Positions 961 to 59,108 of a stretch of 64,000 nucleotides of DNA are shown here, one piece after another. The position numbers and the translations under genes are program-made. Source of the stretch: Fimbriosthenelais zetlandica. Its lineage: Eukaryota. Location: assembly GCA_977030845.1 (NCBI GenBank), contig OZ365112.1, positions 18,414,001 to 18,478,000 of the forward strand. Direction: 5' to 3'. Each line of letters begins with the position of its first letter. Position 1 is the stretch's first letter. A model generated the notes under the pieces. That model was not told the origin of the DNA and ran no database searches. It saw nothing but the letters and a program-made list of their open reading frames with translations.

Positions 961-3900
961 GAGACTTTGGGCACGACGTTGACAGTTTCACTGCCACAGG
1001 AACAGTGCTTCTATAGACAATACTGAGGACTCAGCTGGTTGTACTGGAGCATAACTACCCTCCCAACCTCAGAATGACATGAGTGTTGGGGGTTGACGCG
1101 CTAACCCTGTTGACGGGAAGCTTTAGTGAATTTCATACTGAATTTCAGACAGGGCAGAAATGAGGGGATACTTGTATAAGAACTGGGGTGAATGAAGGGC
1201 GAGTTGAGGGGGCGCAATTAAACTTATGACAGGCAGATTACACATCCAGATTAATTGTATTTTTGTGAAGGATGGTTAAGGCCAGCTCGGGGTTCCCATG
1301 GCCAGATCTGTGATGGATGAAGGTTAAATGCCTGTCTTTCACAGGCTTCATCCAAGTCAAGATCATTCCATGACCTCAGTCACAATCCTCAATGATTTCT
1401 TCAAAATATCAGAATAAAAAAAATATGCATTTGGCAATGACCTTAATATTTTAACCTCTGGATCAATCGCCATGTCTTAACCTGTATATTCCAATGGCAA
1501 TATTTGCTATACGATGCCTTTTCCATACGCGTTGCACCCCCAAGTACCACTGACACACACTGAGAAGGGCCCATACCTTTGGCCAATCCTTTCATGCCTC
1601 ACTGAGCTTGATTGATAAGAAAATTTCATCCAGTCACATCAGCCATTTCATTCGCATCTGGGCATCCTGTAATTTGGAGTGAATATCGGGGTGGGAGCCT
1701 AGGTCAGGCGGGGGGCTGGGCAGGGGAAGGGACATGCTGCATTCCCAGCCAGGTCGCCAGATCAAAGACAAGTCTGAATCAATACGCATTAGAGGCGTCC
1801 CTTCCCACCAGAGGCAGCACCAGTCATCCCCCTCCCCACTCGCTGCCAATATATGCAATACCAGATCAAGATCCAAATATTCCAACTCCCGCCAAGAAAT
1901 ATTTCCAAACTAGACGTAAATGATTCACTTATAAAACAGAACCATCTACATGTACATTAAGTACATATATTAAATGAATTTGGAAATTCAAAGAGGATTA
2001 TTAGATCTAAGAGGGTGGCATTGTTAGCGGGGACCGCGTCACCTGAGCTTTGGGAAGGCGTCAGTCAAGCCTTTCATTACGAGTTCATTTCATTTCACTG
2101 GCTCAAAACAAAACCCTAAGATCCAGGAGTACTTCAAAAAGAAAACCACATAAAATCTCCGCCTCCCCACCCCTCACCGTGAACCTTAAGGTTGGTTATC
2201 TCGTGCCTTTCCACTTGATGAACCAGCGCCCTTCCAACTTCAAACACGCGCCCAGAGCGACTAAATCTGATTTCCTGCTACATTGCATACGGACAGCTTG
2301 CCCCCAGTCGGCGTTAAAGTTCCTACCAAAATACTGGCAGAGAATTGTGGCCACTTTTTATACCATGGCTTCAGCCAAGTTCACCTTTCCAGGGACATGC
2401 TTGCTTTGTCAAAGCCCCGGGTCAACGCCAACTAAATGACATCTAAAGAGACACAAAGGTGCACAAACGGGGCCTCATTGGAGGCAATGTCTTAGCAGGG
2501 CGATGTCAATAGCCCCCATTTCCAGGCTGGTTATGTTGAGGTTGCAGATAGGCAGGAATGGAATTGACAAAGCCAGGGTGGGGAAGATTAGTCGAGCTTT
2601 CAAGGACAATAAGGGGTCATATAACTCTGGTGAGACAAGAGTATTAAGATCCAAACCCAGATCTATACTTTTTTTACAAATATTTTCGGACAACTTTTCG
2701 CCAACCGTTCATACATTATTCAGGACATAATTTAGGGCAGTAGAGACATCCAGTGAATATTTGAGTAATGCCCACGACAAATGGAATCAAATCTCATTGA
2801 CAATAGCACGGCTGACCGTAGTGCTCAAAATGCCCTCAGGCCCTCCTCTCAGGCCCGGCACCTGAGGGCCCTTCACCCACCACTTGATTGAGTACATTTC
2901 ATCATATTAACTCAGCCAGATTAAATAGCCTTTAATGTATTATGTAAGGGTCTGCCACACACTTCCCCTAAGGATCCAAACGTTAGAGATCAAAAGTTGG
3001 ATGTATTGTAGTAGAAATTGTGACGATGACACCTCGGGGGGGCAGAGGAGGATTCAATAGAGTGGTCAGTGAAGTGAAGCCAGCACACTACAAGCAATAC
3101 TAATACCTGTAGGTATAGTCTATCTGGGTTGAGTTCTATATTTACTTGATAATTATAGGGTCTTTATCCTAGGGCTTGACACAAATTGAAAATGCCCCGT
3201 GATTTAGGAATGTTGGGTACAAAATTGATGCGGCGATTGTGAAAAGATACATTAATAGATTCATGAAGAGAAACAAATTAAATCATTAAATACAATTATA
3301 TTAAAATGTACGTACCATTGCATTTGTGAAATATCGCTGTACAAATGGTGTGTGAATTGTCCTGGCGGAGGGGGGATGGCATACATGGGAGGTCGGGGGA
3401 GCCCTGGAAGAAAAATCAAAGAAATCAGTAAAATATCATTAGAATGATCAATCCATGCCTCAAAGGGGATGAGAATGGAGTTTCACAATTATGTCCAGAG
3501 TTAACATGAAAGTTACTTTTTAAAAGTGGATTTTATTTATTTATTTAAATTCCCTTTGAAGAATTACACATCTTAAATAAAGGAAACATATTATATAAAA
3601 ATATCAGTGGGGCTTAATACATTTCTAAAGCGGTACCGAGCTGTTCCATGCGTGAATCAAAAATAAAAGCACCCCATCTCATCACATGAGGATGCGTGCA
3701 GCAACCTAACATGACAAACACCCAACTATTTCAAAAAGAACTTTTTTCCTAATTTACTGAAGTTCCCTTTTAGGCATCTTTGTGTTTTTCCGGCTGTAAT
3801 TTTTCTAAGATGAGATGTGATTTTTCAGGTGTTACTCGGGAGTGCGGATGGGCGGATCCCGAGATCTAAAGGTGTACCCGATGTCACCATGGCAAAAAGC

Positions 3901-6900
3901 CACTGCTTGTTCATGTCTTGCTAAAGGTGGGGGCCAAACTTGACGCCCGGAGACGCGCGAGGTGCCAGATTGAAGGCTCGGTAATAGGGCTTATCAACGC
4001 GCGCCGGAGAAGTCGTCTTCTCCACGCGAGGAAACTTGTACATGTTGGCAAACAAGGCCACAGGAGGCTGGGGTGCTCTGCTTTTTGGTGACTCTTGCAT
4101 GAGGAGACACTTTCATAAGTTCTGGCTGGTGCATGATGATGAATGTTAAACCACTATCATGGCTAGAGGTAAAGTGCAACAAACATGAGCTGTAACTGAA
4201 GAAGCAATTTGTGCACACACCCATTTGTCATGCTATGTAGAGGCGGCTGGATGTCAGGCTCATCTTGTCAATGATACTTTATACCTGCTCTTCTTAGCAT
4301 CCTACCAGCTCCTACTGAGCTGCTCCTCACCCCCAACTTATTTCTCATAATAACCTTTCGCTTATATCCAAGAGCAAGGGTTTTATTTAGGTTTGGAAGA
4401 CCATGCCAACTATATGATACAGAAATACCTCCTGAATGAAAGATTACTTTTATCCCAATGTCCCATTATTGGGAAATCTAACTCTGTTATAAGAGAGTGT
4501 TCACGGGGCTTGAAATACGTCTCAGAAAACTGAGCAAATTTCACACCATGTCCTCGTAATAACAAAGTTTATACCCCATCTTTCCCAGCAGCCTTAAGTG
4601 AGGCACAAAATAATTCCCTAACGCCTAATTATGGGGATAATACTGCTGCTATGCGCCCGACTTAAATATGGCAAAATTGTTATTGTATCCTTTCTCCACT
4701 CTTGAATCATCGCTCAGTCTTTTTGATCTGCTCTCCTGAGTGCACATCCCTATAAACAATAGGTATTGTCTGTGTCACATCGCACCGCTATTAACGCATC
4801 ATTTCTCACTCTTTTCATCACTGAGCCTTCCCTGCCTAATGGTACCATTTTCCTTTCGTTCTCTCAAGGCAAATGCTATAATATGATTTGTTTTCACAGG
4901 AGAGAAACGACTGATGTGGTACGGCCGAGGTAAGGACTGCCTCGGGCATTTATAATGGGCCATAAAATGTCTTGGGTCTCGGCTGTCTGTGGTTATATCA
5001 TCCATGCATACAGACTGAATTATATCAAGTTTTTCCCAATCATATTGCTATTGGCGGTGTTGCATCTTCCTCATGTTATTTAGTTAAGTATGAAACAGTG
5101 GGAGATATAATATTAAGGAAAGTTTGACTCCCTTCATTCATGCTTCAGTTATCGATCATGCATGATTTGCTATCATGGCATGATGAGTGAGAAATCATGA
5201 CACTGAGAATGAGACCAACTGGTGGTCATCACAGAGGTCTTACTCCCACCATGATCATTATCACACACCGGTCATTAGGTTCACCAGCCAGTGTCCAGGC
5301 TTTGTTCATTAGAACATCATCATTATCAGCCCTTGAACCTTGTTACAATATCTAGACCCAATAGACAGGAGAAATGAGTGCATCTATAGTAATTCAATTG
5401 AAAGGAAATAATATCGTCATTTGAAAGAGGATCGATTGATTATTTACTTGAGAATCAAGCTCTTCAAGTCTAGATTAAAAGTCAATTACCACCTCACACA
5501 TTCTCCTCCCATCCCCATCACCTCCACATTAAATGTTTCCACGCCTCACTACCTTTGACTAACGGCTTCCTATTGTTTCCCAATTAGTCATTGTTATTAA
5601 ATTGTAGTTTTAATCTGCCCGCCTCGGGCGCACTTCACACAATATGCTCCTCTTCTCTTCCGACTAATACATGCATGCCTGGAAAAAGTGTATAAAAAAC
5701 AGCCATTTGTAAACGGCTCATATGTTATAACTGGGAGCATTGTTCAGCTGGGAGCAAAAAAACATGACCGTCATGTATTAATGGAATCCCAGTGATCGCG
5801 GCCTTTAATAGTGCCTAGTGTGATGATACTTTTCAACGGCAATGGGACATTAAATGTATGTAGCATGAGCAGGAAACCATGGGGCCAACTGAGGCCGTAT
5901 GTTACAGGTAATGTGGGATATTGGTGGGTCAGCACGCCCCGCTTGTCACCTTGATTAGTTAAGAGCGGGGTATGTTTTATGAGGTGTATCATGTAGCTAT
6001 TGTTCGAGGGGTGCTGGGGGTTTAGACCAGTGCCAATAGAGATAGTGGGAGAGAGTTCATGGCCTGGCCTCCCCTGGGTACTGCACTAGGATCACCCTGT
6101 CCTAGACAAAGGTGGCAAGTGCTCTGGTCATTAGGCGGAGTTGGTGACAAAGGCGACACAAGCAGGCAGAACCCGGTCTCTATTGAGCCCTCTTCTGGCT
6201 TGGCATCAAAAACCACTCTCCCTCTCCTCTATTTCTCCCTTCCCTTCTCCCTCTATACGTTTCTGCTTCACGCTAGACCAGCCATTGTCCGGGGGGACAG
6301 TTCTCTTTGCTAGCATGAGGTCACTTCCCCGTTCATCCAACCCCCAAAATATCAGAGCGTCACTTGGTAGCCTAGGGCGCAGAACGGCCATCGTTTCTAA
6401 ATCATTAAATTATTTACTGTTTGATCTCATTTTTCAAACAGTAAAGTTACTGCAAATTTTATAGCGTTTCGCTGCAGATTTTATCACAATTAGAATAAAA
6501 ATTTACGAATAGCTAACAACGTCCAAAATGATGTTGGAACAGGAAAATGAAATTTCGAGCCGTAATGTTTTTAAGAAAGAGGCATAAATCGTTTCATGAA
6601 ATGTTCATGAACAGAAAGATCAAAGGCTTATATCAAAGACAAATCAAGAGAATCAGTAGAATGACATAACGTCATTAATGATGAGAGGGGTTTTAAGTTC
6701 TCCCGTGGGAAGGAATTGGTCATCAGATACTCTAAGCTGATTTAGAGCGAGTATAACCAACCGACCTGAGGGCCAGGGGCTCTGAGAGCAAATAAAATAA
6801 ACTCACCCCTCCAACCACCCCCAAAATCAATGAACATTCTCTTTACAAAAGGTAGAAGAAACAGCAGGCCTCTTGCTGGAGGTATTCTATTTTCATGCGA

Positions 6901-8450
6901 CCAAATAATGAATTGAATTATTTTAGTAGGAGGATGAAGGGAGAGTAGCTCTCCAATGAGGGAGGCGGGATTAGTGAGCGGATAACGAGCGTCCCGCGGG
7001 AGCTGGCAGGCCCGCGCCGGATAACAATCAAACCTGCCTCTCTAGGGCTGCCCGAGGCCAGGAGAATAGACAGGAAGATGGGATAGAGGAGGAGACAGAT
7101 AGATTACACTCCTCCATGGGGTTCTACACCCGTCCATGCCTCATTTGGGAGGCAGTGAGTTGATTCATGGCGCCCCTGTCAACTGGTATCAGTCACAGAG
7201 GTGAGGGGGGCGTGGGATGCCAGTTGCAGTCAAGCTCAACAGTGGTGCAAGTTTTTTTTCCCCCAACAAATCTATTGCCCATTAATGATGTATTATAAAA
7301 GCCCCATCTCCTCCAGCTCCTCCTCCATGGCGGCTCCCATTGACATGTCAATCACGGCTTCCCCCAGCAGTGACGTGATTAGGCGCGCAATGATAACTAA
7401 TAGAAAACACAATGAGGCTTAAGAAGAAAAGTGCATCGGGAATGGCAAGGATGCGGCGGGGAGTTAAGTGCTTGTTGAATGAAGGGGGTCTGAAAGGCGA
7501 GATAATAAATGAAAGAAAACAATGTCAACCATGGAGTAATCAGAGAGGGCGGCCAGGCATGGATACCTGACTTTCCGTGATCAGCGGACAGTAAAGCCAC
7601 ACTCACAAATCACAGACATAATTAGAGGCTACCCGCCGACCTGTCTTAATTTGTGCTGTTAATTAAGAACCACATACCTGACGGGTCCTTCTCCTCCTCA
7701 TACATGCTGTTAGCCAAATTATTGGCATTCACAAAGTTTTGTGAATGCGTATCGAAGACGTCGTCGAACTCCAGCTTGACTGATTATGTAATCCGATGTA
7801 AGGTAAAAATGTCGTCTGCTAAGACGATGACGTAGCGCACCCAGGGGAGGAGGGAAGTGGAAGCAGATTGTGTCAACAATGTCTTGATGGAACTATTGAT
7901 GTTAATCGTGGTGGAGGAGTAGGGGAGAGTTGTTGAAGTGGATGTTGGAGATAATAAAGTAAGGTAGACGTTGGCGACTATGATGAGGCAGGAAGGTAGC
8001 AGTAGTCGTAGTAGTAAAGTCTCCTGTCAATGGATTGGGCCTCTATGTCAGTGTGTGCTCGCCACTCTCTTAGACTGTTATGTTGTTGAAGAGGCGGGCG
8101 CGTGTTATAGTAAACTTGTAAGGCGACGTGTCTGTGTGTTGTGTGTGTTATGTTCCGCCTGTGCTACCTCACAGAATTCTGGGCAGGCATGCATTGACGG
8201 GGGGCTCAATATAGGCCCGCTCCTTCCTACCTCCCTCCACCTCCACACGCCGAATCAGATGCTAGGCCCTGCTTCACATCTAACAAATAGCAACTTTGAA
8301 AGCGATACCACAATTAAGCTACCTGGAACGCCTAATAGCTTCTGATTGGCTGGCAACTGGCCCTTTGATGTTCGCTTCAAAAACACTGATTAGCCAAATT
8401 TGTGCAACAGGAATTACCGGCAGGTAGTAGGGAGTTGGGGAGAGGGGGAC

Positions 8451-8500
8451 GGAGCAGGAGGAGGAGGAGCAGGAGGAGGGAGAGGAAGAGAAGAAGGAGG
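8451..8500 (+). repeat. GGA/GAA purine-rich low-complexity tract
   Basis: ggagcaggaggaggaggagcaggaggagggagaggaagagaagaaggagg. Confidence 0.7.
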
Positions 8501-11500
8501 TGGCGTGTGCCAGGACCCGACACCCAGGCCAGCCCAGTCCAGCTTTAATACTCAGCAAAACTGGCAACCCAATCACACAGCCTTCGTCTCCGATGCTCAA
8601 AGCTCGACGCCTTTTTGATATGTCGCACTTGGTTTCCAATTACAATTTACCCAGTGCTGTGTGGCCCAAAATGATATTGGGTGGCACAAAGCGGCTTGGC
8701 TAAGGCCGTGGCGTCTGGAGAAAGGGGGGATGGAAAGAGGGAGGTTAGGAGGGGAAGAACTGGATGAGGAACAGAGTTAGCACACCAAGAAGGGTTCTAT
8801 CTTCTTTTTACTCTGTCCTTCTATTCAGCGGTAGTCTACCAACACCTGTTAGTGGAGGAGGGAGCTCCCTATATATAACTCCAGTTGTTCCTGGAGGATG
8901 TACGGTGTGCTAACTGGTATTGAAGGGTGCAGGTAGTACCCCTCCTCCAAGGAGAGAAGAACTCGGGAGCAGAGGGAGATATACCAACCATGGAGGCAGA
9001 GCTACAACACAAAGAGCAACAAAACGTTGGTTAATTCCGTCTTGTGTGTGATGTGTACTGGAGGCCTGTCAATGATGAATCACGACACGCACAAGCTGTA
9101 TCGACAGCCCCCATTGGTTGGCTTGCCCCATTTCATCCACCCCACCCTCTAGTCTTTTTTAACTACCCCCACCCCCACTCTACCAAACCCACCACACCCA
9201 TTCCTTTTTACACGCTTAACCCCGCGCTAATACACTGGGAGAGGCTCATAAATTTGGAGCTGGTCCAAAAAACCTCCATACGTGGATAATAAGTACCAAC
9301 CCGACCAACACCACCCCCGCCCTTTTTCTGGATCACACATGAATTAACCCCCCTCCCCCACTCTACCCCTCTCCACCAAATAATCTACCTTTTAGTAATG
9401 AGGTGATCCCTGACGCAGCTTTAAAGGGAGATATTAGGAGAGGGCGCGTGGGTTCATGGCAGAGAGAGGTGAGTGGGTGTCTTCAGCCCAGTTCTACCCC
9501 TCCACGGCATCAAAGACCAAAGTATTAATAATATTTAATTCCTTGATGACATCTAATCCTCAGTGATACAAAGCTGGGCTGGAAGCATCGATTACAACGG
9601 CTTCACAGAGCTCCCTCCGATTTGAGACTAGCTCAAGACAAATGAAGGCCCGACCAGTTCGCCTAACGATCCGGACTTGTATACTTGATCTTTGATACCC
9701 AATTTCCATAAGGGACTAAAGGGAATAATATATGACCCCCACTTGGAAATTTTCTTATATCAAAGTGCAGAGGTCTTTAATTCGAAATTAGATTTATAGG
9801 TCTGGGCTACTATCGACCAAGTTCAAATACGACGGCCTTTTATCTTTCTTACGCCACTTTGCAACCCCGTGTTGGTGTTTTTTAAATTTCAATTCAAGCC
9901 ATGGCACAGTCGTTGGCTGTATTCATAGACCACATTTTTGCAACAACTATCGCCCGTCCAAACACGACGATCGATTGATAATTGAGATGTAATTACATCC
10001 GTGTTTAAAAAAACAAAACTATACAAAAACTGAATCCAACAAATTACAAATCATTACAGTCCAAAAAGAAAGAGAGTTGATCTCTGAAACAGCCATGATT
10101 TCAACCCGGAAATCGATATAGGACTGAAAAACACTGCAACTTATTGAATGAGTGCCTCACCAGGCAGTCATGGGGATGGATGGGAAAGTAGATCATTCCT
10201 CCAGGTGTCAAGTATCCTCCAGGTGAAAATATACCAACTCAGGCTTTACCTGTATACAACTGATACCGCTAGTAGTAAGCAATATGCTCCTGTACACGAG
10301 CATTCGTCAACAGACACGCCCAAAATAAAATTCCGATGCAGCATCAAGATCAGCATCATGTGCAATTGTATTATATGTACATGAATGGTAAGGGTATATA
10401 GCAAGCAAATGATTGTTGGTTGTGAAGACTGGTCAGAGTGTATATGATCCACATTTGCTTTATACCGCAGAAGAATAGTGCCGCCATCTAAACCAATACA
10501 TAAGGAGAATTTTCAATTATATTTTCAAATAAATATTGACAGGAAATGGCGGCAACTTCACAAGAACAATTCCCTATATATGTATGTTTATGTGGATAAT
10601 AAACGATTTTCCCGTCTTTTATGTAGCGTCACCCTGCATCAGAGGCGTTTTATAAGGAAGAAAACTTTGAGACTGGTAGAAGAGAGACTGCCTGGTGAAG
10701 CGGCGGATTTCACACTGAAGACATGAAAACCACTGGGAAGGTGACAACTGGCATTTAACCTTTGTATGCCACCCATCAAACAAACTGACAGCCACCCCTC
10801 TCAAAGCCCACCCTTAATTCACTCCAACACAGACTTTCAAAACTCCTTTTTAACCTCTTTATTGGAATTGCTTCAAGAAATATCCGATAAAAGAGAAATG
10901 AGTAGAGTTTTCCATGGGAACAACAGGCTGCAAGCCTTTATTCTTCCTCTTGTTTTTCAAACAAGTTTATAAAAAATGTCATAAAGTATAGCTGTAAAGC
11001 TGCAGTTCCCATGGTTGACCGCACCCCATCAGCAATAGCTAATTAACAAACTGCTGTTGGAATTCCAACGAATGATTAAGCCTCTGACACATGACGGGGT
11101 TTGTGGTTGTTACATTATTTAAGGCCACTCAAAGCATTGCCTGTGGACATGCCACATTTTCCACTACTACTTACACCATTCCCGTCATTTGATGTCAGTG
11201 AATGGAATTCAGCTTCATGCCACAGGTGACGATAATGTAGCAGAACTCTTTATATGTTGCTACATTTATAGTAGAAGTTGGACGTATTGTATGCTAGATT
11301 AACACCTGATCGATTGATGGGAGGAAGGATGGACTGGGTATAGGCTGGATCCACGGCGGGACATCCCCGTGCGGCAGGACTGCATCTTATCAAGAGTTAA
11401 GTGGCACCCGCCACCCGCTCCCCATTATTGATGCCTCCCCAAGGATCCAGATCAAGAGAGGATCCGATGGCCGTGCCCCCAGACACTACTTTACCTAACC

Positions 11501-14500
11501 CTCCCTCCATCCTCCACCCCGTCCTCTTCAGCATGCCTGCTCCAGACCCTCAGCTCCCCACGGTGCCCCTACACCCCAATCTGACCACCATGTTTTATTA
11601 AATCAATGCAAAATGGACGCAAAGTCCGAGGTGACGAGAACCTTCCGCGGCCGTCACAGGCCCTGTGCGAATCGTCAATGGGTCCTGTGCGTTACGTCAA
11701 TGATTTATGTGCACGTTGGGCGTTCCAATGTCACAAGTTGGATTCACTTTATACTTCAAGGCCAGGGGCATTACCAGCTCCCGTGTATTGTGCCAAGACG
11801 AGTCAACAATTGCTCTTTGTATAGGCACACTACCACCCGATTAAAAAGCATTGAATTAATGATCAAAAACTCTCATTTACAATGAGCTCTGCTCAGATAA
11901 GGAAGGTGAACGCCACGGATGATTATAATTGACATAAAAAGCACAGCTTCTATAGAATAAAACCCTGCATGGGGCACTTCATAGGGCCATGAAAAAATAG
12001 CACAGAAGTCATGACTCTACCTAGGAGGGGGAAAAAGCTGATCTTTTTCATCCCGGGGTTAAGGAGATACAAAAGGGTAGTGATATCTAGACAAAGAATG
12101 AAAGAGAAGTGTGTTTTATGGTCGTGTTTGGTGATTAAAGGAAAGGGGGCATGCTTATAACTGACTTCCACTATTTCAGTCCGTCCCACATGAAAGCTAT
12201 GGGAGCAGGAGGAAACCTCTGGGACAAGAAAAGATGGCATGAATTCTGCTGGAGTTATTTACAGGCTGACGGGACGCAGGACAGACAGACGTCCTACCCT
12301 CACCATTCATCTGTGGTGGCGGCAGAAAGAGCTGGAGAATAAGAGGCTGTCACAGAGACAATGTCCTCACAAACGCTGGTCCTTTTTGTTTACTACAACA
12401 CCGCTTCCTGAGATATCAGTAATGAATTCCATCGATTCAACAAGGCCTATTAATTAGCTTGGCGGGGCTCGGGTTACGGCACTAGCTTTTCCAGCCGAAT
12501 TTCCTCTGCGGCTATCAAAGCATGTCTGACTGCTAGATGATAGCTTATGTTTCAACGTCGGATCATTCAATACTATTGCTTAATCAAGTGGTCCTTATAC
12601 AAGATGGCACAACACAGAGGCTGTTTTGTCGATACAGCGAAGCTCTGGCCCGCTTTGAACACAACACATTCATTCCGACCGGCCTCTCTGAACTTACTCC
12701 GGGCAAAAGACAAGCGCATCGGAGAAATATTTTCAATGACAGAGAAAGAGAAAGTAATTCCTCATAAATACCAAATCCCGTTTATCGTCACTTGTGACAT
12801 TATCATTGACTAACAGCACACAAAAACGATAATAACATCGCCAGACATCGCCTCGAACTAAAAGCTCATCCAAGTAATTGAAACTTGCGAATAGGGGAAG
12901 ATATCATTCCTCAGCTACTTTTCGATTATTTTATTTTTCGATCATTGAAGCAAGTCAGTCTGCAGTCACTTAGAAGGCAGGTGACATCTACACTTTGAGA
13001 ATCAAGAGCAACACAAAAGGTTGATGGGAGAGTAGTGGAAAATGGATCTGGAGGATGCCTTGCCAATGAGAACAGCGCCAATGCAATGACGGATCACCAA
13101 GAAGTCCTGGCTATATATGTAAAAGGGACGATTAACAGTGGCTGACCACTGACTGAAAGCAATTAAGAACTGACACCAAAGGGCCGTCATCGGGCCTGGT
13201 TGAATTAATGAGTGTGTGAATGAGAACATGCGTTGATCGCGAGCATGGTGGGTGAATGGTGGGGTGTAGCCTTTATGTTATCATTAGCAGGTGTTGATGG
13301 ATTGACATTGTCCGTGTTCAGGTGAGGCCAGGTGAGAAGATCAAAGAATCAAACAGACACGGTTCTGTCCCAACCACACGCAGTGCAGCCAGCAGCCCGG
13401 CTCTCAAAATTCACTCCATCACACAAAGCCAAACAGGTTAATCATAACGCGAATGTCACATCTTCCTGGTCGACCGTGCATTTACGTCGGAGACATTATT
13501 GGATCCAAATGGATCAGATCCTGATGGAAAACGATTTCGCAGGGATTTCCAGATCATGGCCAGCAAACCCGACAAAAAGAGACACCACGACCCCATGTGT
13601 AGTGGGACTGAATATTCCTTGACCATTGTTTGGGGTAATTTTGAATGGAAAACAAGTGGGGCATGAAATGTTCACATGGCACATGCACCCTCCGACTTCA
13701 AACACTGGCTCTGTCAGAAGTCTGAGTTTGTTTCTAGAAGGCCGAGCACACTTTCATGTGCTTGCTTGGACCTCGTTTCTCCCCTCAGAGCTTTTGTCCA
13801 GAAGACACATCTTACGTATCCCTACTGTTATCCGGTGATACTTGAACTATGGGAGGTTGAAATGTTATATGGGAAAAGGGGAAGATTTGGCATGGAAAGG
13901 GGCGCGAGTGGCATGGGAGTTTCAGAGAACATAAGGGAGAAAAAGAGGAAAAAGGAAGGTTCTGTGTGAAACATTAGTCAGGTTTCACTTCCTCTAACAT
14001 GGACAATGCGGGCAGTGGCATAGCATGGTATATCATGAGCTTCACGACAAAATGCATGTCGATTCTTTTGGATAAGGCTAAAGCAAAAACCACCAGCCAC
14101 GTCAGAATTTCATAAAAATCTAAACTTTCACGTAGTTAATGAGTGTAAAACGAAGGGCCAGTGAAGTGGAACAGGCAATTTGAATTGGAAATGGATCAAG
14201 TATCAGAGTTGGCACAAAAAAGGCAGCAGAACGATGTGCTAAGTTGACATTGGCGGGTTGAGAGTTGTCCAAGTAAACTCTGGCCACCACAGCGTGGATG
14301 TTAAAACAGCCCGAGCTAACAAAGACTGCCAGGTTTTTGTCTCCTTAGTTCCGTCCTGTCGGCAAGGCTGGCAGCGCGAATAAACAAACAGCCGCCCGTC
14401 ACCCATCCACTCTACACCCCGCCTTTACAAGCCTTTGTGCCGCAGGCAAAATTCAACTATGGTTCAACTCAGATCAGCTGATGTATGCATCTATAGAGAA

Positions 14501-17306: not shown

Positions 17307-17439
17307 CAGTTTTGGGGTCTATATGTACAGGAGGGATACCCATGTGCGCGGGAGGGGGTTGTGCTAGCGATTCGCTACCTGGATAGATCATCAACGACGA
17401 TAGCGAACCCGGGTGCGGTGGCACCGGAACTTTGCTGCC
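17307..17439 (-). CDS. TCF: Internal coding exon of a TCF/LEF (pangolin / TCF7L2-like) HMG-box transcription factor, from the context-dependent/Groucho-binding region
   Basis: The minus strand reads ttttgcag|GGC AGC AAA GTT CCG ... GAC CCC AAA ACT G|gtaagt: 44 codons plus 1 nt, phase 0 in and phase 1 out. The peptide GSKVPV...QPPPAHMGIPPVHIDPKTG matches the vertebrate TCF7L2 exon SNKVPV...DVDPKTG and the invertebrate TCF/Pangolin PPPAHMGIPP motif (recognised from memory). Confidence 0.93.
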
Positions 17440-30270: not shown

Positions 30271-30360
30271 CCCTTTGATGTTAGTGTGGCTCTTGGCCGG
30301 TGGCGGCAGCACCTGTAGTGGCGGCCCCTGTTGACAGCTGTCTAAAGCTGCGTTTGATCC
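30271..30360. promoter_or_regulatory. Candidate bipartite Wnt response element (HMG site plus two helper sites)
   Basis: CCCTTTGATGTT 30271-30282, TGGCGGC (reverse GCCGCCA) at 30301-30307 and 30319-30325, and a weaker GTTTGATC at about 30352. Confidence 0.5.
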
Positions 30361-33684: not shown

Positions 33685-33705
33685 ACATCAAAGGGAGGAG
33701 GCGGC
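33685..33705. promoter_or_regulatory. Candidate bipartite Wnt response element
   Basis: ACATCAAAGG 33685-33694, followed 4 bp later by AGGCGGC 33699-33705. Confidence 0.45.
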
Positions 33706-41747: not shown

Positions 41748-44700
41748 TTTCCTTCTTACATATGACTATGGAGAGGGTTGGCTAAAGCCAAATGTTGGAC
41801 GTAGGAAGGGACATGGACAATGGTATCAGTCAGAGCTTTTTAATGCAGGCCCACAAAGTAATTGAGTGAGTTGGGAGGTGGTCGGGAGCAGCTCTATGGA
41901 GCAGATGAGTCGTTGAATAATCAAGGATCAGTCATCTGACCTTCCCTTGTCTCTAATTAGAAGAAGGGGTCGGGGTGTCTCTCTACCGTGTCTCAGCCAG
42001 CCCGCATGTAAATGCCACTTTTCACGCACTACTTAGAAGCATTAGCAATGAACACTGGGTTCTCATCTTAATCATTGTCATTAAGAATAATAATGTCTCC
42101 CTCAATCAGCTCTCCAATGACACAATATCTATATGCCTCCTCTGTTATGACCATTAGGAAATATACATCTAAAAGTCTTTGTGAAATGCATTCGAACTGC
42201 CTCAAGTTGATAAGCATTGTCACTTCCCGAATGTATTGTCTCCAGGACTCTAACTATGGCGAGCATTGAAGCATGGTGAGATACCGCCCTAATAAACCAT
42301 AGCCGACGTCCTCAACCTTCCATTGCCATAGCAACCGGTCATCAATGCCAACTGTAAATCAGAGACAAGTCTTCAAGTCGTGTGATAGGGTGAAATGTAG
42401 AGCCACCGACTTCAACTGTGGAGGTGGTGTTTTTTTAAATCTTTAACAGAAGGACAAGTTCCCACACTATAGAGTGAGGGCCTCATACTTTCGATAAAAC
42501 AACATCAAACTTAGAGCTTGAAAGGTGTGCTAGAAAAGGTGAACGCCCCGTCGTCTTCACTCAGCTCTATATAAGTACTCTTCTTCACTGTATTTAATGT
42601 CAAGCAGCCATTATGACTGCCTCACTTTATGGCGAATCAGCTGGTCAATTCCAACTCCAATGTTACTCAAACATATATGAGTCTCAGTTTTGGGTAATAT
42701 GTGGAATGAGAACAAGATTAATCAAAAAGCATAAATAGGAAGGGCCACACAGCAGGCAGAAGTTGTGTACGTACGCATGTGGGAGAATGCAACAAATAGG
42801 TAAAAACAATGAACGACTAAAACGTCTCGCCATGCAACATGGATCGCTCTCATTTTATCCAGCTATTGATTTGAATCAAAAGCCATATTTTTGAAGTTTC
42901 TGGCGCCCAGGATCCTTAAAAAAAGCAGCCAGTTCGATCCTGGAGACATGACGGACAAGAGAGGAAAACTAATCTGTTTAAGGCAATATCACAGAAAACA
43001 TCTTGTGAAAACATGGGCCTGTTGTCATTTTTCCCTTGATCTGAACTCTGCACCTTTTAATGATAAAACGCCTCGCCTTGGAAATGATCTTTATCCAGCG
43101 AATTTCGCTGAGTCGGGAGGCTGGTTTTTTAATGAAGTGAGAGGAGCGGGAAGTGGGGGGAGGTCGGGCTAGGTAATGAGTACACAAGGAAGCTGAAACA
43201 CGCTCGAGTATGCTCCAATCAAGGCAGTGAGCGGTGATAACAGACAGCATGAAGAAAATGCACTACTAAACACCCTGCATTCTTTTTTCACCTCCAGATC
43301 CTTGCATTAGGCGAGGAAGTGCTGAGTTCACACATCTAAATATCAAAATATCTGCATACCCAAAAGCATAAATGTCAGCCCTAAAGTAAATATAGGAAGA
43401 AGTCATTAAATATAAAACATTGGGTTGACATGTTGACAAGCGAGGTCAACAATAGAGATTTAAGTGGAGAGATGTCTGAGGGGGACTGTGAAATGTGCGG
43501 GTGGTATTTTAACCCTGCTGGCGGCACGGGCTCCTGCTATCTGCTCTAATTATACACATTAAATTATTCACGTGCGTGGTGCCTGCTCAAGGTGGGCGCG
43601 CTCTCTTTGATCTTGATCCTTAGTGGCCCAGGAGACAGCGGCCCCTACCACTGCCAAGCTACACCAAGCACACCCCAGCGCCAACATGGTTAATTCTGAG
43701 ACAATATGGTGGCAGTGTGTTGGCTTCCATGAGGTTTATATAACTCTAAGTGAACGTGATGTATGGGATGCACATCTTCACAAGTTTAAAAGCTAATAGG
43801 GCATTATGAGGCATCTGCCCTTACTGGTGCCAAAAATATCAATACTGTTATCAACTCCACATTTAGCAGTCGACATCATTTAGGACCAGTCATCAATAAG
43901 GAATACATCCCCCACGTACACTGACATAAGGGATCTATAATCTCAATGATTGAACATGTCCATGTGATAGCTTCATAGCGCCTCATCGTCCCCGCTATTA
44001 TGATTAGATTTACCTCGAGACATCTTATGTAGTACTGATCATCCGATTCATTTCACGTACCTGGGATGTTCAGGAAGAGAAAGGCCAAGGGAATATATAG
44101 ACACACTCTTGCTGTATTCAGCTTGGCAATGCGACCTGTTATTTGAACTTTTTAACGAGTCCCTCTCTCACACACCATTAGCTTTGTCCCTTCGCGAGGG
44201 GAAAAAACTCAGCGTCCCCAAAAAAGAAGACTCCTGAAGATCCTCAGCTGCTATGGCGGGGAGACGGGCGTCAGTCTGGGGAAGAAAATGTCAGACTTTT
44301 CCTCCGTTTTAGACGAGAGGTTCTGGCCGAGGTAATACAAAACTTTTTTTAACTCCATCCTCTCAAAACTTGGTAAAATGCACCTCACACATGAAGATCA
44401 CGAGAAACGGGACCCTTGGCTTCAGAAGAGGCATGTGAGGGAAAGGTAAAGTATTACCTATTCGTCACAATGCTGTTTCCTTTATTCAGCATAGATGTGG
44501 AAGGGTTGAGGCCTCGGCATCTGTGCTTGATACTCACTATGGGGAGGGGGAGGTTGGCCTGGGTGGGCTGTATGGGGGTGGAGTTTCTCTGGCCCCTCAC
44601 TGCCCCCTTGATGTCCCCTTCCCGTGCCCCCATTCCCAGGGCCAGTTCCACCCTTGCCCTTGGTGCCCCTCATTACCTCAAAGACAGGCAATTTACCAGC

Positions 44701-45106
44701 ATTTGCACAAGTTCAAAGGAGGCCGCCGATCGCCCACTGTATGTTTGCTATTGATTGGCAAAGCTCACTGAGACTGGGGCCACTCGCTCTATTGAAGAAG
44801 TGATTTAAGAATTTCCCTTCCGCGCGCCCATCTCTCGCTCGCCCCATCTGTCCCCGACCATTGCCTCTGAAAGGTATTGGTGAATGATAATGAAAAGGCA
44901 AGGCCTCGGCAAGATGCAATAAATACAACTTTACGTCAGAACGTATTAGAGCCAAACCATACTTCACCAGGCAAGCAGGATCGAGGGTATAGTTGAATCA
45001 ATAGCCAAAGAGAAGAAATCTGATTTTTGAATTCCCTATAAGAGATATCATGTTTGTTGATAGCACAAAGGAATTGAGCAGCGACAGATGTGTTTCATTG
45101 CTATCT

Positions 45107-46299: not shown

Positions 46300-46440
46300 A
46301 GAATGAATTGCGCACGCGCCTTTGAACCGTAGCAGGGCGGGCTCATAGTAAGCGAGGTGGCCGCAATCAGATTGGTGGAAACAATAGGGAAATCTGGCCG
46401 GTGACCCCACCTGGGAAAAGGCGGCCATTTGTACGTGACA
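46300..46440. promoter_or_regulatory. CpG-rich promoter/enhancer-like cluster
   Basis: NRF1-like TGCGCACGCG 46309-46318, TCF site CCTTTGAA 46319-46326, GC box 46335-46341, CCAAT (CAGATTGG) 46368-46375, YY1-like GCGGCCATTT 46421-46430. Confidence 0.35.
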
Positions 46441-47821: not shown

Positions 47822-47850
47822 CCTTTGATCTTGGTGGTCTAATGCCGCCA
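47822..47850. promoter_or_regulatory. Candidate bipartite Wnt response element
   Basis: CCTTTGATCT 47822-47831 and an exact helper GCCGCCA 47844-47850. Confidence 0.45.
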
Positions 47851-50800
47851 GAGAGAGCAGCTCTCCTCGCATTCTGAGCTCTTCAGCCAACAGCTCTGCT
47901 GAATTTCCCAATTCGCATGCAAAAAGAGGTTATGAACTGTTTTTAAAGTCAGCTGAAAAGTCCCATCCCCCAAGCTGCTGTCCCCACAAGACATCCTGGC
48001 ATTATTTTTTTTCATTATTTACACAGGGATGGAGAAATGTTGCTTTTTTGCCCTGCCGGCAGGCCAGGATGAGGCATAGGGGTGTGTTAGGGTATCTGGG
48101 TCAGATGTGCAGGTACCTCATAATGGGGGTGGCATGTGAAGTGTGTGTCAGGTATGCTGTTTTAATGAGGTGCACTAATTAGTTAAACCACTGACCCATT
48201 TCAGGGGTGTGATCTGACGTCAGGCACATTAACCTGTCGCTAATGACCCTTGTACCTGTCGCCATGACAACATCAAAGTTATGGGCTGTTTAAGATGACA
48301 TTCATACTTCACGGCAGACATCTTGGATTGGGAGGGCTGGCACTAAGGAGATGATCTCTTTGGGTTCTTCAGACTTATATATTTTGGGGTGAAAAATATC
48401 AATGCTGGAAACGTTGGCAAGCACTGCGCAAAGCATGGACGTCTTTTAGTGTTGGGTTAAGCGATTTGGATGGCATAAAGTAACGAGGAGGGAGAAGGAC
48501 AGTGATTCAGGATGAACCTATTGATCTAAGCACTGGCAGTAAAAGTCAGGAGGAGACCGTAAGGAGAGGACACGGTCTGTTTACCTCTGCCAGCTCTCGC
48601 TCATCGATCAATACCCCCGCCTCCCACCTCACCCACTACCCACATCATATATTTATAACATTCAACAAACAACAATGCTCTTATTAGCAAGTTACCCAAT
48701 CAAATTTGTCTGAAATATTAATCAGATCTGTCGACTTCAAAGGAGTAACTTCAATGGATTGGCATCTCTCCTGTGACCAGGCGTAACCCTTCTTTTCTAT
48801 CCCATTTTTGTAACAAAAAAATACTGATGAATTTTAATGCATTTTAACCCTGACTATGGGGAAAAGCAACAGGGAAGTTTTTCAAATAGATCATATCGGG
48901 TTCTATCCGATATCCAAAAGCAGGTATGGCCTACTTTGTGCGAAGTTCTAGCAGCAAAACTGGCATTTACGCAGGCCTATTGCACACGTAACAATCATTT
49001 ATCATTTAATATGGTCATGAATGACACACATACTTCAGACATGTGTTATATATGTCGCACATATATACTGAGATATGGGTGGAGATCGCTTTGCCTAGGA
49101 ATGTCAAAGAGCTATGAATTCAGCCAGTTTTTCACAGCGTGCAGAGCTTGTTGGTTAGCAAGTCATTTGTCCTTGTTTTGAAAGAACAATTGGCAGAAGG
49201 CAATCCTGGGCACTGAGAACACAAGATCCTGATGCTCACATGTTCTGGAGTCTTTGAGTATTTAGTTATGAGCCGGAGGAAGAAGAACACCTGAGGGATG
49301 TTCTGTTGGGGGTTAGGCAGGTGCCAAGCATCACGGGGCCCACCTACAGTCTCAGTAAACAGTTGATCATCCACTGAATGCCAGGAAGCATTGTTATTCC
49401 TGCCTGCCGTCACTTAACAGCATACACTGTCTTTTCTCAGGCTCGCTGGGTGGCATCCTAGCCTGCCTTGATTCTCTGTGCATGTTACTTGTTTATAAAC
49501 ATAACTTAGCCTTTTGCCTGCATTACATGGTGGAGGCCTGGGCTGGCCAATGAAGCCAGAACAAGAGGCAGTAATAACCCTCACATCATCACATTCAATG
49601 CCAAATCCCCCAACCCTCTATCTCACCCGGCCCACAATGCTGTCATCTGAGCCCACCAGTCAGCTAGATTTACATCCAGCTAAACACAATAAAGCTGTTG
49701 TCTCTTTTTTCTCCCTCCACTTTTCTTTTTGCGGGGCATTCTCCCAAATCCACGGGTGGGTTTTTATCTCGCTCCTGGCAAGCCTGAGATGCATCCATTA
49801 GGAGTCGGGAAGAAGCCAAGAGCCCGTGTGTCCCTAGTGAATGAAGAAGCCAGACCATCCTCCACAACTCCAGAAAAAAACCTTCTCTTCCGAAATTGAT
49901 TTCCATAATATTCCCTTAAAATCAATAAACATGTCAAATATTTCTACTAACCCCAATAAAAAGATGTGCCACAATAAAGAAACGACACTTGGGGGTAGTT
50001 TGTTTATAGCGGGAATTATGAAGAACGCATGGAGTAAAAACTCCTGGAAAAGCCAGCTAATGACACTCAAAGCGAGCGAGTGCCAAGTGAAGAAAGCTCA
50101 GGAGGCAGACCCAGGAGCATGTGTTCTCGTATACCTTTAATTTGGCACCTCCTTCCCCATGGAGGAAGTGGCTAAGTGTACCTATTTAACCCATCCCGTG
50201 CTGATGCCTTGCCAACGTTAAACAATAAGAGAAATGCAGGCACCATTACCAACAGCTATATCAAACAGCTGGGCTACCAATTTACTACACTCTGGCAAAC
50301 TTTGTAAATGTTGTAAATGCGAAAAGGCATTTCAGAGAGAGTGGTCAAGAATGATAGGCAGGGGTCACTGCTATATTGGGGTATCTGTACAGGAAGATAT
50401 CTACAAACCACAGGTTATGGCAATCTGTATGCTTCCTAACAGGTATATAGCATAGTGAATAGACATCAAAGAAAAAGGCTTCTATTCTTACAGGAGTGCA
50501 CCTGGTAGTACACGCTAGTTCATACCCCTTAACTGGGGGAATCGTAATAAAGATGAATACTCCATGTTGGGTGCGTGATTTATGGTTGATTAGCATGCCA
50601 CAAAACGAAGGAGACATGGCGTTTGTGCAAGACTGAGTCACCAGTCCCTAATGACCTTATTAACATGAAGCCCTTCCCACAGTATTAGTCAACCTCTAGT
50701 TAACATTATCCATCAGACAGGTCAGTCCGTCATTATAATTCAATCACTGAGTGCATATGAGAAGGTAGCACGGTGAACATTAATACAGGGCATGTATTTA

Positions 50801-51389: not shown

Positions 51390-51412
51390 ACTTACCTGAA
51401 AAGAAAAAGTTT
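51390..51412 (-). other. Candidate recursive splice site (ratchet point / zero-length exon)
   Basis: The minus strand reads aaactttttcttttCAG|GTAAGTac: a pyrimidine tract and 3' splice site directly abutting a consensus 5' splice site, in TCF sense orientation. Junction at 51396/51395. Confidence 0.6.
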
Positions 51413-54400: not shown

Positions 54401-57400
54401 ACTATAAGGCGACAGGAGGTGTTTGCAGTAGAGGGTTTACAGCAGCGGATCCTTGGATCCAAGCGCGGCATACTTGCCTTTGATCTTGGCGCGCCATGGC
54501 CGCGGGTGACGCTACAATCGGCTCTGCATAAAGCCAGCAATGAGGCTCATTCCAACTGCTGCCTCCCTCGATTCTCCCTCCTGCTAGACTGGCTAAGGTC
54601 CCGCACTTAAATATATTCTCGATCTATACATTCAATTTCTTTTTCTGGTCCACTTTACTTCTCATGCAGTAAAGAAAGAAATCTATGTCTTTGGCATTTG
54701 GCACAAGTGAGAAATTCGATTTATATTTGAATCCAACTGCTGAAGGAACTTGCAAGGGACAAAAACTCAATTACATAGACAAGGCTGCTTTATCTGAATT
54801 GTATGAATATCTAATTTATATTTGACATATTCAGAGCAGGAATACAGCCATAGACATTTTTTCCTATTTGATGGGACAGGACCACATGAAAATGTGTGTC
54901 ATTCGCTTCACACACAAACTTAACCCAAAGGTCGTTCGTGGAGATTCTGACATTAGAAATCTACCGTCTTGGCATTTCATCTCCTCGCGAAATGACAACC
55001 CCTGCCTGGAGCCATGTACCAAGTCTAAGGGAGAGTAGGAAATGGGGGCCTTCTATTTCCTCCTCCGCCCTCTGCTATATGCAGTCAGTATATCCCTCAT
55101 CCCAATCTCCACATCAATAGCTTTGATTTCTCTTCGTCGCCCTTTTTTATGGGACCAATCAGCTGGGTGTATAAGTGTATCTCCTCCTTATCCGGCTGAG
55201 ATTTTCTCCAGTGGTTTCAGCAGGACCATGAGATGTATTGATTTCGCTGTCAGACCACTGAAGAAAGAGGAGTGATCAGACGGATGATTTCCCAATTAGT
55301 TGGCTAGTTGTGGCGGGCGGCCAGCGCCAAACACGGCGAGCCGGGTGTACATAAGACCAATATTTGGAAGGAGTTGATGGCCGCAGACCAGATGCCATGT
55401 TGATGACTGATACCAACATCCCCGCTACATAAAATAATCTACCCAGGTACTGTTAACAGCTGCTTCCACAACCAAGACAGTCCGACGTGAATAGACTCAC
55501 ATGAAATAAGCCATCATGAGATTCTAGACACAGTACTTTAATAGAAACCACGAGGTTGATCCCAAGTACTGGGTGGAGTGTGGGGTAAGGATGGGTGGTA
55601 ATAGAGGCTGGATGGATTATGGGGATGAAGACAGGGGAATATGGCTCCATCTTCTACTAGAGCCAGCCAGTGTATCTCTCATTTACCCGGCCACTCAAGC
55701 CATCTCATTTGTTGTAAGAGAAGAGGACAATTAGAGGCTGGCTGGCGGTGATGATAGCACTAAGTGAGATATGACTGGAGCAGCTCTTTTCACCAGCTCT
55801 ACCTCGCAATCCAGCTCACCAAGTGTTGGCATATTAACTGATCTGTTGTGATCAGGCATTGGGAGGCCAGCAGTGGGTCCATATTATAGCTGTCAATGCT
55901 TGCTATGAGCCAATTAATCCCAACAAACACAGACTACAGTCTAGGCCCTGATAATTCTCACCATGGGAGCAGCTCGCATTCTGCCTGAGTAAGCTCACCA
56001 GCTGATCAGACTTGGTTACAAAAATGCACACTATAATGAATGCCTCGGCGAATAAGACGAGCTGCTCTTCTACCCTCTACCTGAAGGTGTGAGATACAGT
56101 CAGCCCCAGGGTCTAGCACAAAGGTCGTTTGTGCTGGATTTAACAGTAGAGCGAGCCCTCTAAATAGGTCTTACAACCAGTGCAGATGGCTTCTTTTTGT
56201 TGCTGTGTCTTGTCGCATGCTTCCTTCCTTCCAGCTAGATGAGGGGATAGGCGGAGATGGGGAGTGAGCCAGGGTTATTGAAGCAGTTCTCCCTGCATGT
56301 AATCTTGTACTTTTAATGGGTCACATAAATCATAATACGACTATGATACAGAAGTGGGGCCCAAGGGACGCACTGGTGACCTGGGTGTATTTAGAGTTGG
56401 ATTGTACTTGCATTATGGCCTGCCTGAAACACAAGCCCTGGCGTCTCGATAGGGCCTTTACAGCCTCTTCTCACACAATCCCCTGGTCCTCTGAGAGCTG
56501 GAATGGGCCAGCCTCTCAATTGTCTGTATTTGGGGGTAGGGGGTTGTGCTGAGACACACAGAGGTGGCAATACTGGTAGAGGCTGAGAAGCCATCTTCTC
56601 AGCTCCTCCTAGCGTCATTGCCTTACCCCTAAAGCCTCCTGCATTGCTCCTGAAGCCATGGGGACAATTATGATCCCCTTGTATCGATCGTCAGCGAGTC
56701 GGGCGGGGGAGATGCCGCAGACATATCATTTGCACTGTCATTGATTATCGGCTGACGGACTAATAGTTCTGTCAATACAAGCGAAATAATGCCATCCGCT
56801 CGCTTATTTCCCCACGCGTCAAAAAACCACCGTTAAAATGTAACATTTGCAGGTGGTATGAACAGACCAAGTGATGCGCCAAATTGAAGTGCACCCACAG
56901 CCAGGAACAAGCAGGAATTACATCGCCCCGGAGCAGATAACGCACATTTCATATGGCCAAATTTCACTCAGATGGATAGAGATGGCAGGGGTACTGCAGG
57001 GGCAAAATCTAGGTCTGTGAGATGGTTGGAGGGCTAGTAGTGCTACTCTATGTGAAAGGGTGGTGGGGGGAGGGTAGCATAGTGGGAGTGTCTTAGGGCG
57101 TCCTTTCCTAGTCTTTTATGTGTATAATGTGCCTAACAAGGCTGTGGAGAGGGACACTTTCAATAGGCGATCTCAGCGTGGCCAGCAAGCTGGGAAGCCA
57201 CTGGTAATTGGACACGCGATCATGTGGCTTCCTTCTGGCTTCGTATGTGGCTTCTGACATCAAACGCTAGTGTATCACTGTAAAGCTTGGCGCCAATAAA
57301 CAAGATGGTAAGCAGAGCTGGACAATGGCCACGGCCCTGCCTATAAGCCTGCTGATGGATGTATTAAGACGGATGACCTGGCTACCGTGTTATTGCATTG

Positions 57401-59108
57401 GAGCACTCCATGCTCTCTGTACTGTGTCAGCTAAATCTACCCTTGCCATTTTGTCTCTACCCTTCCGGCCTTGATAACAATAAACAAAACAGCAAATCGC
57501 CCGAACATGGCTATTGATAGAGAAAGCAGGGCTCAGAGCAAGAGAACAAAATGGGCAAGCATCAATGAGGTTCCTCTCTTGATTTCACTCTCCTCAAGAC
57601 ATTTTTGGAGCTGGCGTCTCACGATTGTTGTTGGTTGGAGTGGAAACATCTCAAGTGATGGATTAGGTGCCTTAACAAGGCAGTATTCTGGAGAGACTGG
57701 GTCTCTGTCTTCACATCTTCAATTGTGGCCTTAGTAAACCCCCAGCAGGGCCCGCCTTGGCCTGCTCCCGGTTAAGATGGGTTCCGGCGCTGAACAAGGT
57801 GTAAGTAATTGCCATTGTGTGAACAGCTGGCATGAGACAGCCACCAGGGATTCAAACCTTGGATCCCTACCCCCTAACATTACCAGGGCAGACGGGAAGA
57901 AAACTGAGTGGGTGGCTGACAGTCGGAATAAGGATCCAAACTTGTCCTGCCTTCTATTGCACCCCTTTTACGGAACAAGATTGTCGTCCAAACCTGAATT
58001 ATATCCATGTAAATCACACCCCCCTCGCCATGCCCAACACTGCCTACAAATGGCACCATTCACTGCTTCCGACAAAAGAAATCCAGGCTGAAGAAATTTA
58101 CAGCCCCAGGAAGTCCTCCCCGGAGCTCTAGCCATGAAATTATCAATAGGAGTTCTCATGTGTGCATGGCCTTCAGGGAGACACAGATTGAGAACAGGCA
58201 AACTAGTGTCTCCTTATACCAGGTTTCATATTCATATATGGAAACCAAGCCATCTAAAAAGTAGAAAGTGCACAAAAAGCTCAGATCTATTCCAGCACAA
58301 TATTCATTGCCATACATGAGTGTGGGCAGTGCAGCAAGCCTCCACTGATATCAGGAGAGATTGTGACATTTTCTCGTCATTTTGTCTATTCGGTGTTTTA
58401 AAGTTAGCGTGAGGGAGTAGCCAGGAGGGTGGGGGTGCTGCAGTAGAGAAGCCTTTTACTGGCTAATCCGGCCAGCCGCAGCTTGGGCCTGCTGGATCCC
58501 AGGGGTCTCCCCCCTCCACGCCACTACAACTCACATCAAAGGACTGATATCATATTGTAAATCGTGTGCGCCTATCAGGTGGAATTCCCAGTCCAGGCAT
58601 AAACCGTGCTTTCAGAACTCAGGCAGGCTCATCAGACCCAGTCTTGCTTAGACAAAGCCTTGGCTGCAGGGGGGCTGCTGGCTGATTCAGGCCTGTATCG
58701 CAGAAAATATCACCAACCCCCTCTTTTTTCATCAGCCTCACTGCTGGCCCTGTGTGTAAGGCACCCCAATGATCCTACCCTTTCTCATTCAGCTCTAGTA
58801 ACATGCCATGTACTGAAAGCCTCAGTGCGGTCCGTTATGGTGATGGTCAAAATGAGAGCTGAGGAATGTATAGTTAGGGTCCGCTCTCCTCTACAGGTAT
58901 AGGCCTATAGACAAGATGAAAAGCTCTTTGAAGAATGATTTAAGACAGTGCGCTTGGCATCTAACTAAGGCCAATGCATACGGGGGAGGAGGGGGCGGGG
59001 GCAAAAGAGTTGAATGTTGAACGAGTGCATGCCAGACCACGACCATGTCCTGCTCTTCTTGAATGGAAGCAATGGTTTCTTTTACATAGGGAAATTGTTC
59101 AATTTGTG

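Follow-up and report, generated by a model that had tools for sequence, protein, structure and literature searches.

The window analysed here is a 64-kb stretch of the Fimbriosthenelais zetlandica genome (contig OZ365112.1, positions 18,414,001 to 18,478,000) that lies inside a gene for a TCF/LEF transcription factor and carries 14 copies of the TCF-binding sequence CTTTGATST, a candidate system of autoregulation. Searches with tblastn, in which database TCF proteins served as queries, located two TCF coding exons in the window, both on the minus strand:

17307..17439, minus strand, TCF coding exon A, 133 nt, translation ...PPPAHMGIPPVHIDPKT, last codon split
3316..3403, minus strand, TCF coding exon B, 88 nt, translation GLPRPPMYAIPPPPGQF...SQMQW

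Exon A was matched by 148 TCF proteins, the best match being residues 101-145 of Platynereis TCF (76% identity, E-value 6e-14), and exon B aligned with residues 145-175 of the same protein at 81% identity. Both exons have clean splice sites (acceptor ag and donor gtaagt in the case of exon A), and their translations join directly in the protein, the codon divided between A and B being read as Gly. The queries were collected starting with a short HMG-box bait, which led to a Lottia fragment and through it to full-length TCFs, and a Haliotis protein led to the named spiralian TCFs; all proteins used after the bait were database entries. No domain was detected by Pfam in the short peptides of exons A and B. 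The gene carrying the sites encodes a TCF/LEF factor, and the two exons bear out the proposal of an earlier note on this DNA that the window lies inside a TCF gene.

All 14 CTTTGATST sites are intronic to the TCF gene, the promoter of which is outside the window. A pattern search found six of them on the plus strand and eight on the minus strand:

1759..1767, minus strand, TCF site tCTTTGATCTg, in the intron 3' of exon B
6617..6626, minus strand, TCF site CCTTTGATCTt, ten-mer, with a second CTTTGAT 6 bases off (6632-6638)
8362..8371, plus strand, TCF site CCTTTGATGTt, ten-mer, in the intron between A and B
13338..13346, minus strand, TCF site tCTTTGATCTt, in the intron between A and B, palindrome TTGGATCCAA 160 bp away
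21978..21986, plus strand, TCF site tCTTTGATGTa, in the intron 5' of exon A
30272..30281, plus strand, TCF site CCTTTGATGTt, ten-mer, GGCGGC 20 nt 3' (30302) and GGATCCAA 90 nt 3'
33685..33694, minus strand, TCF site CCTTTGATGT, ten-mer, same-strand Helper GCCGCC 5 nt 5' (33700-33705) and TTGGATCC 27 nt further 5'
39730..39738, minus strand, TCF site tCTTTGATCTg
43605..43613, plus strand, TCF site tCTTTGATCTt, 5' flank GC-rich (GGGCGCGC)
47822..47831, plus strand, TCF site CCTTTGATCTt, ten-mer, perfect Helper GCCGCCA 12 nt 3' (47844-47850), then GAGCAGCTC at 47855
48270..48278, minus strand, TCF site aCTTTGATGTt, the single site of this list that lacks a pyrimidine at position -1
50463..50471, minus strand, TCF site tCTTTGATGTc
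54477..54486, plus strand, TCF site CCTTTGATCTt, ten-mer, between the palindrome TTGGATCCAA (54453-54462) and GGCGCGCC / GGCCGCGG
58533..58542, minus strand, TCF site CCTTTGATGTg, ten-mer

Further CTTTGATS cores bring the number to 19:

9508..9515, minus strand, CTTTGATGc, without the trailing T
18579..18586, minus strand, CTTTGATCc, 1.1 kb 5' of exon A
24090..24097, plus strand, CTTTGATCg
25612..25619, minus strand, CTTTGATCc
61183..61190, minus strand, CTTTGATGg

Of the 14 sites, the 13.9-kb intron between A and B holds three and the intron of more than 46 kb that extends 5' of exon A holds ten, the remaining one being 3' of exon B. The density of the cores is similar in both introns (2.9 and 3.0 per 10 kb).

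The excess of these sites is real and statistically solid. The earlier note had listed the 14 nine-mers and seven CCTTTGATST ten-mers, and all of them were found exactly where it had put them. Its estimate of about 1.4 nine-mers and 0.3 ten-mers by chance, made at an assumed GC content of 43%, was close to the mean of dinucleotide-shuffled sequences, 1.67 nine-mers (standard deviation 1.27, largest count 6) and 0.50 ten-mers (largest count 3), the true GC content being 0.445 throughout the window; the roughly tenfold enrichment that it had claimed is real (14 observed against 1.67). The excess of CTTTGATST persisted in Markov simulations of order 1, 3 and 5 (z = 9.1, 9.0 and 4.9, respectively). 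A null taken from the real sequence was obtained by counting every permutation of the letters of the pattern in the same window; CTTTGATST ranked first of 3,024 distinct permutations, with 14 copies against a mean of 1.29, and the runners-up were mostly shifted versions of it. The look-elsewhere problem was addressed by scanning all nine-mers with one two-fold degenerate position. ASATCAAAG, the same motif read on the opposite strand, reached P = 1.3e-8 and came second among the non-repetitive patterns, behind only the unrelated palindrome family GAGCWGCTC. Base composition and low-order k-mer bias were ruled out by the Markov simulations, the permutation test and the pattern-class scan. Since CCTTTGATST is a published Lef1 motif label (PMC11240583), the pattern was not tuned to the window.

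The enrichment is specific to the TCF consensus. In a panel of about 30 consensus motifs of developmental factors, YCTTTGATST was the sole enriched one (11.6-fold), and the motifs of Sox, Fox, GATA, Ets, E-boxes, homeodomain, Cdx, Su(H), Gli, Smad, T-box, TEAD, nuclear receptor, AP-1 and others were near background in the window. This panel ruled out a generic effect of regulatory DNA, and Sox sites were rejected as an explanation, the Sox motifs being at background. Among the 19 cores, a pyrimidine occupies position -1 in 17 and T occupies position +9 in 14, eight of which also have T at +10. The consensus drawn from the cores is YCTTTGATSTT, the classic optimum CCTTTGATCTT. Near relatives of the motif (CTTTGAA, CTTTGATW, CTTTGATSV and the Sox-type CTTTGTT) occur at background level in the window. 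Hence, the enriched form tracks the biochemical optimum at each position, in agreement with the earlier description of the motif as an optimal TCF/LEF site, and the 14 CTTTGATST copies, seven of them ten-mers, match the published definitions of the HMG site (SCTTTGWSWW and CCTTTGATST; PMC4154663, PMC11240583).

The sites had been described as spread rather than clustered, which is correct, and their spacing is even more regular than random. For the 19 cores the coefficient of variation (CV) of the gaps was 0.45 (P ~0.0003), and the largest empty stretch measured 6 kb (null median 11 kb); for the 14 nine-mers the CV was 0.51 (P 0.011). The spacing test was selected post hoc. The only close pairs are 47823/48270, 447 bp apart, and 6617/6632.

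The surroundings of the sites are GC-rich, with a GC content of 0.50 within 50 bp against 0.445 for the window (P 0.002) and no rise in CpG. The Helper element, which applies to TCFs with a C-clamp, is GCCGCCR, and functional HMG-Helper pairs are mostly 0-12 bp apart (PMC4154663). A canonical Helper accompanies three of the 14 sites, namely 33685 (5 nt 5'), 47822 (GCCGCCA, 12 nt 3') and 30272 (20 nt 3'), and several others have GC-rich flanks. The presence of GCCGCC within 30 bp of three of the 14 sites exceeded the null value of 0.34 (P 0.005; P 0.02 within 25 bp). In addition, a weaker site, CTTTGAA at 44712-44730, has GGCGGC 3 nt 5' of it, an arrangement that recurs as GGCGGC-tcc-CTTTGATCT close to the 5' end of the gene in Lingula, and is a possible further bipartite site beyond those of the earlier note.

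Several trivial origins of the array were considered. None of the 14 sites shares its flanking sequence with the others, sensitive self-BLAST of the window returned nothing beyond the self-match, and a repeat finder reported one trivial 31-nt pair and eight tiny tandem arrays. With neither shared flanks nor self-BLAST matches, the sites are independent occurrences, and a repeat family as their source was ruled out, as was, on the same evidence, an ancient tandem or segmental duplication that could have produced the even spacing. A signal acting in the intronic RNA was ruled out by the absence of strand bias (8-/6+) and by the Rfam search of the window, which found nothing; the lack of strand bias indicates an element acting at the DNA rather than the RNA level. 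The whole 64 kb is nearly free of repeats, which is unusually clean for intronic DNA; the near absence of internal repeats is in keeping with a regulatory landscape under constraint.

The TCF loci of seven other species were analysed with the same permutation test, those of Lottia and Helobdella being partial:

Patella, 15 CTTTGATST in 65.5 kb, rank 1 of 3,024
Lottia, 5 CTTTGATST in 20.7 kb, rank 5 of 3,024
Lingula, 5 CTTTGATST in 44.7 kb, rank 29 of 3,024
Lamellibrachia, 8 CTTTGATST in 96.5 kb, rank 49 of 3,024
Helobdella, 3 CTTTGATST in 32.5 kb, rank 73 of 3,024
Physella, 8 CTTTGATST in 107.5 kb, rank 94 of 3,024
Nematostella, 2 CTTTGATST in 27.5 kb, rank 160 of 3,024

The excess recurs in TCF loci of other phyla, though more weakly in Lingula, Lamellibrachia, Physella, Helobdella and Nematostella, and ranks highest in Patella, where the density of sites (2.29 per 10 kb) resembles that of the window (2.19) and 12 of the 15 sites have the Y...T form. 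When the upstream and gene regions of the six species with a known 3' end of the TCF gene were pooled, 43 sites were counted in 304 kb, for which a background matched in composition gives 7.5. No site occurred in the 58 kb of DNA downstream of the 3' ends of TCF, with 8.3 expected at the rate of the gene (P 0.0003). The excess is therefore specific to the locus and not genome-wide in the genomes of those six species.

Some of the sites are conserved in position. When the introns of Lottia and Patella are aligned, two of the five sites of Lottia are orthologous in position to Patella sites, one being identical and the other changed only at the degenerate S base (C/G). Both are situated shortly 5' of the exon-A homologue. 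One conserved limpet element (L001:7290-7390 in Lottia, L005:49203-49303 in Patella), about 0.6-0.7 kb 5' of this exon, has a Sox-like ACAACAATAAC at a distance of 2 bases from the TCF site. In the vicinity of the 5' end of the gene, a stretch of about 35 bases, with TGAATTGGATGTTTTCA among them, is almost the same in Patella and Physella; GTCTTTGATCT and a GC-rich Helper come next, and the pair CTTTGATCT-N-GCCGCC is kept there in both of these gastropods and in the brachiopod Lingula. This deeply conserved block (L005:9300-9440 in Patella, L007:9210-9350 in Physella, L004:8880-9020 in Lingula) is located 0.6-1.1 kb upstream of the TCF coding start and may belong to the 5' untranslated region or the promoter. 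In Patella, Lingula, Physella and Nematostella, optimal sites occur no more than about 1 kb from the TCF 5' end. Unlike in the window, the sites are clustered in Patella (CV 1.66) and Physella (CV 1.85).

We propose that the sites are probably functional TCF sites kept by selection, through which the TCF gene receives input from the protein it encodes and hence from Wnt activity. The 14 sites (19 with all CTTTGATS cores) would be selectively maintained high-affinity sites for the TCF HMG box, distributed over at least 60 kb and two introns. With the Wnt pathway off, TCF would sit on them together with Groucho-type co-repressors, and with the pathway on, together with beta-catenin, so that transcription of the TCF gene would follow Wnt activity in a feedback loop like those of vertebrate LEF1, TCF7 and Tcf7l2. 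Occupancy of the sites by TCF, Tcf as the regulated gene and the sign of the feedback are what we infer here. Autoregulation is supported by the recurrence of the excess in other spiralian TCF loci and its end at the 3' end of the gene, by the conservation of the limpet sites and of the site-plus-Helper pair at the 5' end, and by hints in the literature that in Platynereis and Hydra the mRNA of tcf is dependent on Wnt/TCF. The Platynereis transcripts of Tcf seem to go up in the gut upon Wnt activation and down upon inhibition, with the opposite response elsewhere, which the authors call a single unquantified observation; the same paper cites direct autoregulation of LEF1, XTcf-4 and zebrafish Tcf3 (PMC5996498). 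In Hydra, neither axin nor tcf itself is up-regulated when TCF is inhibited (PMC8049744).

Several results weigh against this interpretation. No excess of weaker TCF-like sites was detected 100-500 bp around the strong sites, which are solitary, and the clustering of HMG sites within a few hundred bp that characterises classic Wnt enhancers was not found in the window. Viewed from the Helper side, the 26 GCCGCC elements of the window showed no association with TCF half-sites; bipartite pairs are a minority, because the association is seen from the sites and not from these elements. The loci of the two other annelids are only weakly enriched (rank 49 for Lamellibrachia and 73 for Helobdella), and in the alignment of the window with the Lamellibrachia gene, the sole complete annelid locus in the comparison, exon A alone was aligned and none of the intronic sites; a search for a nearer annelid relative with a genomic locus found none. 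Moreover, GAGCWGCTC and TTGGATCC are as over-represented in the window as the TCF motif, and with two such unrelated motifs not every enriched k-mer in the window needs an explanation of the TCF type.

These two motifs, 11 copies against 0.6 and 12 against 1.8, respectively, speak for another reading, in which the excess of TCF sites is itself a k-mer peculiarity, either of the lineage or of the whole genome, that means nothing for regulation at the locus. Such an origin is highly unlikely, as neither motif was found in the TCF loci of the seven other species, and the TCF motif, set apart by this absence from lineage-specific oddities, recurs in them and stops at the 3' end of the gene; the enriched form also equals the biochemical optimum base for base, and the window is without repeats. 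The least probable of the alternatives is that another HMG-box factor, Sox or similar, is the main protein bound. The core ATCAAAG does fit the loose Sox/HMG consensus WWCAAWG, and one of the conserved limpet sites adjoins a Sox-like ACAACAAT. However, the Sox-preferred CWTTGTT and CCWTTGTY occur at background (ratios 1.05 and 1.47), TCF/LEF motifs have the same flank preferences as the sites (Y at -1, S-T-T after GAT; PMC11240583, PMC4154663), and the C-clamp Helpers next to some of the sites are TCF-specific.

Two further explanations accept binding by TCF and differ in its purpose. Intronic enhancers often act on neighbouring genes, and the sites, though truly bound by TCF, could serve such a gene or a shared Wnt-responsive domain instead of Tcf; no sequence feature ties an intronic site to a promoter. 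We consider this unlikely, since optimal sites lie about 1 kb or less from the TCF 5' end in Patella, Lingula, Physella and Nematostella, since the excess stops at the TCF 3' end with a pyrophosphatase gene coming next, and since Tcf mRNA responds to Wnt manipulation in Platynereis (PMC5996498) and Hydra (PMC8049744). Alternatively, the array may not consist of enhancers in the main, and may instead buffer free TCF, as a sink, or shape the locus through a scaffold of HMG-induced DNA bends. The even gaps between the 19 cores, the small largest gap and the solitary nature of the sites speak for it, and the clustered layout in Patella and Physella makes the evenness particular to the lineage of the window. 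This role is nonetheless very unlikely, because the spacing test was post hoc, 19 sites are far too few for titrating a transcription factor, and one strong TCF site in each of many separate enhancers would also yield dispersed sites. We know of no precedent for a sink or scaffold role of such an array. It is also quite unlikely that this lineage started from a clustered layout of the gastropod type, with sites close to one exon and to the 5' end, and rearranged it into regularly spaced, solitary optimal sites, one per 3-4 kb over at least 60 kb of intron, and that the array works as a locus-wide device (a graded Wnt rheostat or a scaffold of HMG bends) and not as ordinary enhancers.

Autoregulation by TCF, the reading we prefer, would make the locus a further case of known TCF/LEF autoregulation and Wnt feedback and involves no new kind of mechanism. 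As in vertebrate LEF1, TCF7, XTcf-4/Tcf7l2 and zebrafish Tcf3 (PMC5996498), a gene of the TCF family has TCF/LEF sites in its own regulatory DNA, and the output of the Wnt pathway would feed back on the amount of its DNA-binding factor. The vertebrate genes differ in having one or a few promoter-proximal sites, often with a different paralogue involved, whereas in the single-copy TCF gene of the window 14 or more optimal sites are dispersed over 60 kb or more of intron. The Drosophila nkd and Notum modules (PMC4154663) share with it the HMG-site consensus and the GCCGCCR Helper, present 5-20 bp from three window sites, and pairs of the Drosophila type with the textbook 1-bp spacing occur in the TCF 5' regions of Lingula and Patella. 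In the fly modules several HMG and Helper sites are packed into a few hundred bp, whereas those of the window are solitary, evenly spaced and mostly without a canonical Helper. The feedback loci Axin2, Sp5, Notum and Nkd are likewise pathway-component loci dense in TCF sites, but they encode negative-feedback regulators, and TCF is the effector itself. For Tcf, the observation in Platynereis points to feedback that is positive in the gut but negative in other places (PMC5996498).

What is new here is the proof of the gene context, the even solitary layout, the cross-species control with flanking DNA and the conserved site-plus-Helper block at the 5' end. In most invertebrates TCF is the sole DNA-binding effector of canonical Wnt signalling, and whether or not Wnt controls its level affects the behaviour of the pathway, which may be self-reinforcing or self-limiting. 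The published spiralian evidence that we found for Wnt control of Tcf is the single unquantified observation in Platynereis, and the window offers concrete candidate elements in its 14 optimal sites, three of them with a Helper. The recurrence of the sites suggests an old origin for the binding of TCF at its own gene, which would be widespread among molluscs, brachiopods and annelids and could date back even further.

Apart from the TCF sites, the window contains other over-represented motifs. GAGCWGCTC, which always reads GAGCAGCTC on one strand, is the most over-represented non-repetitive pattern, and its copies have no common flanks. The second motif, TTGGATCC, was counted over both strands and occupies ten places, twice as the palindrome TTGGATCCAA:

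471, 4317, 25031, 36549, 37740, 41559, 41886, 47855, 55778, 55967 and 56059, GAGCWGCTC
2972, 13499, 22830, 30363, 33721, 54453, 57859, 57932, 60041 and 62130, TTGGATCC

Three copies of TTGGATCC lie less than 100 bp from the strong TCF sites 30273, 33685 and 54478, with a marginal P of 0.016 in a test chosen after seeing the data. Co-location with TCF sites within the window was not significant for GAGCWGCTC, ATAGGCCTAT or CACTGACCA. The 10-bp palindrome ATAGGCCTAT occurs at 40910, 51240 and 58899, three copies against 0.07 expected, and the next base is always A.

The pyrophosphatase gene mentioned above encodes an inorganic pyrophosphatase and is arranged tail-to-tail with TCF, downstream of it, in Lamellibrachia (L003:91397-96486), Lingula (L004:39733-44704) and Physella (L007:100373-107534), the linkage of the two genes being kept across three phyla.

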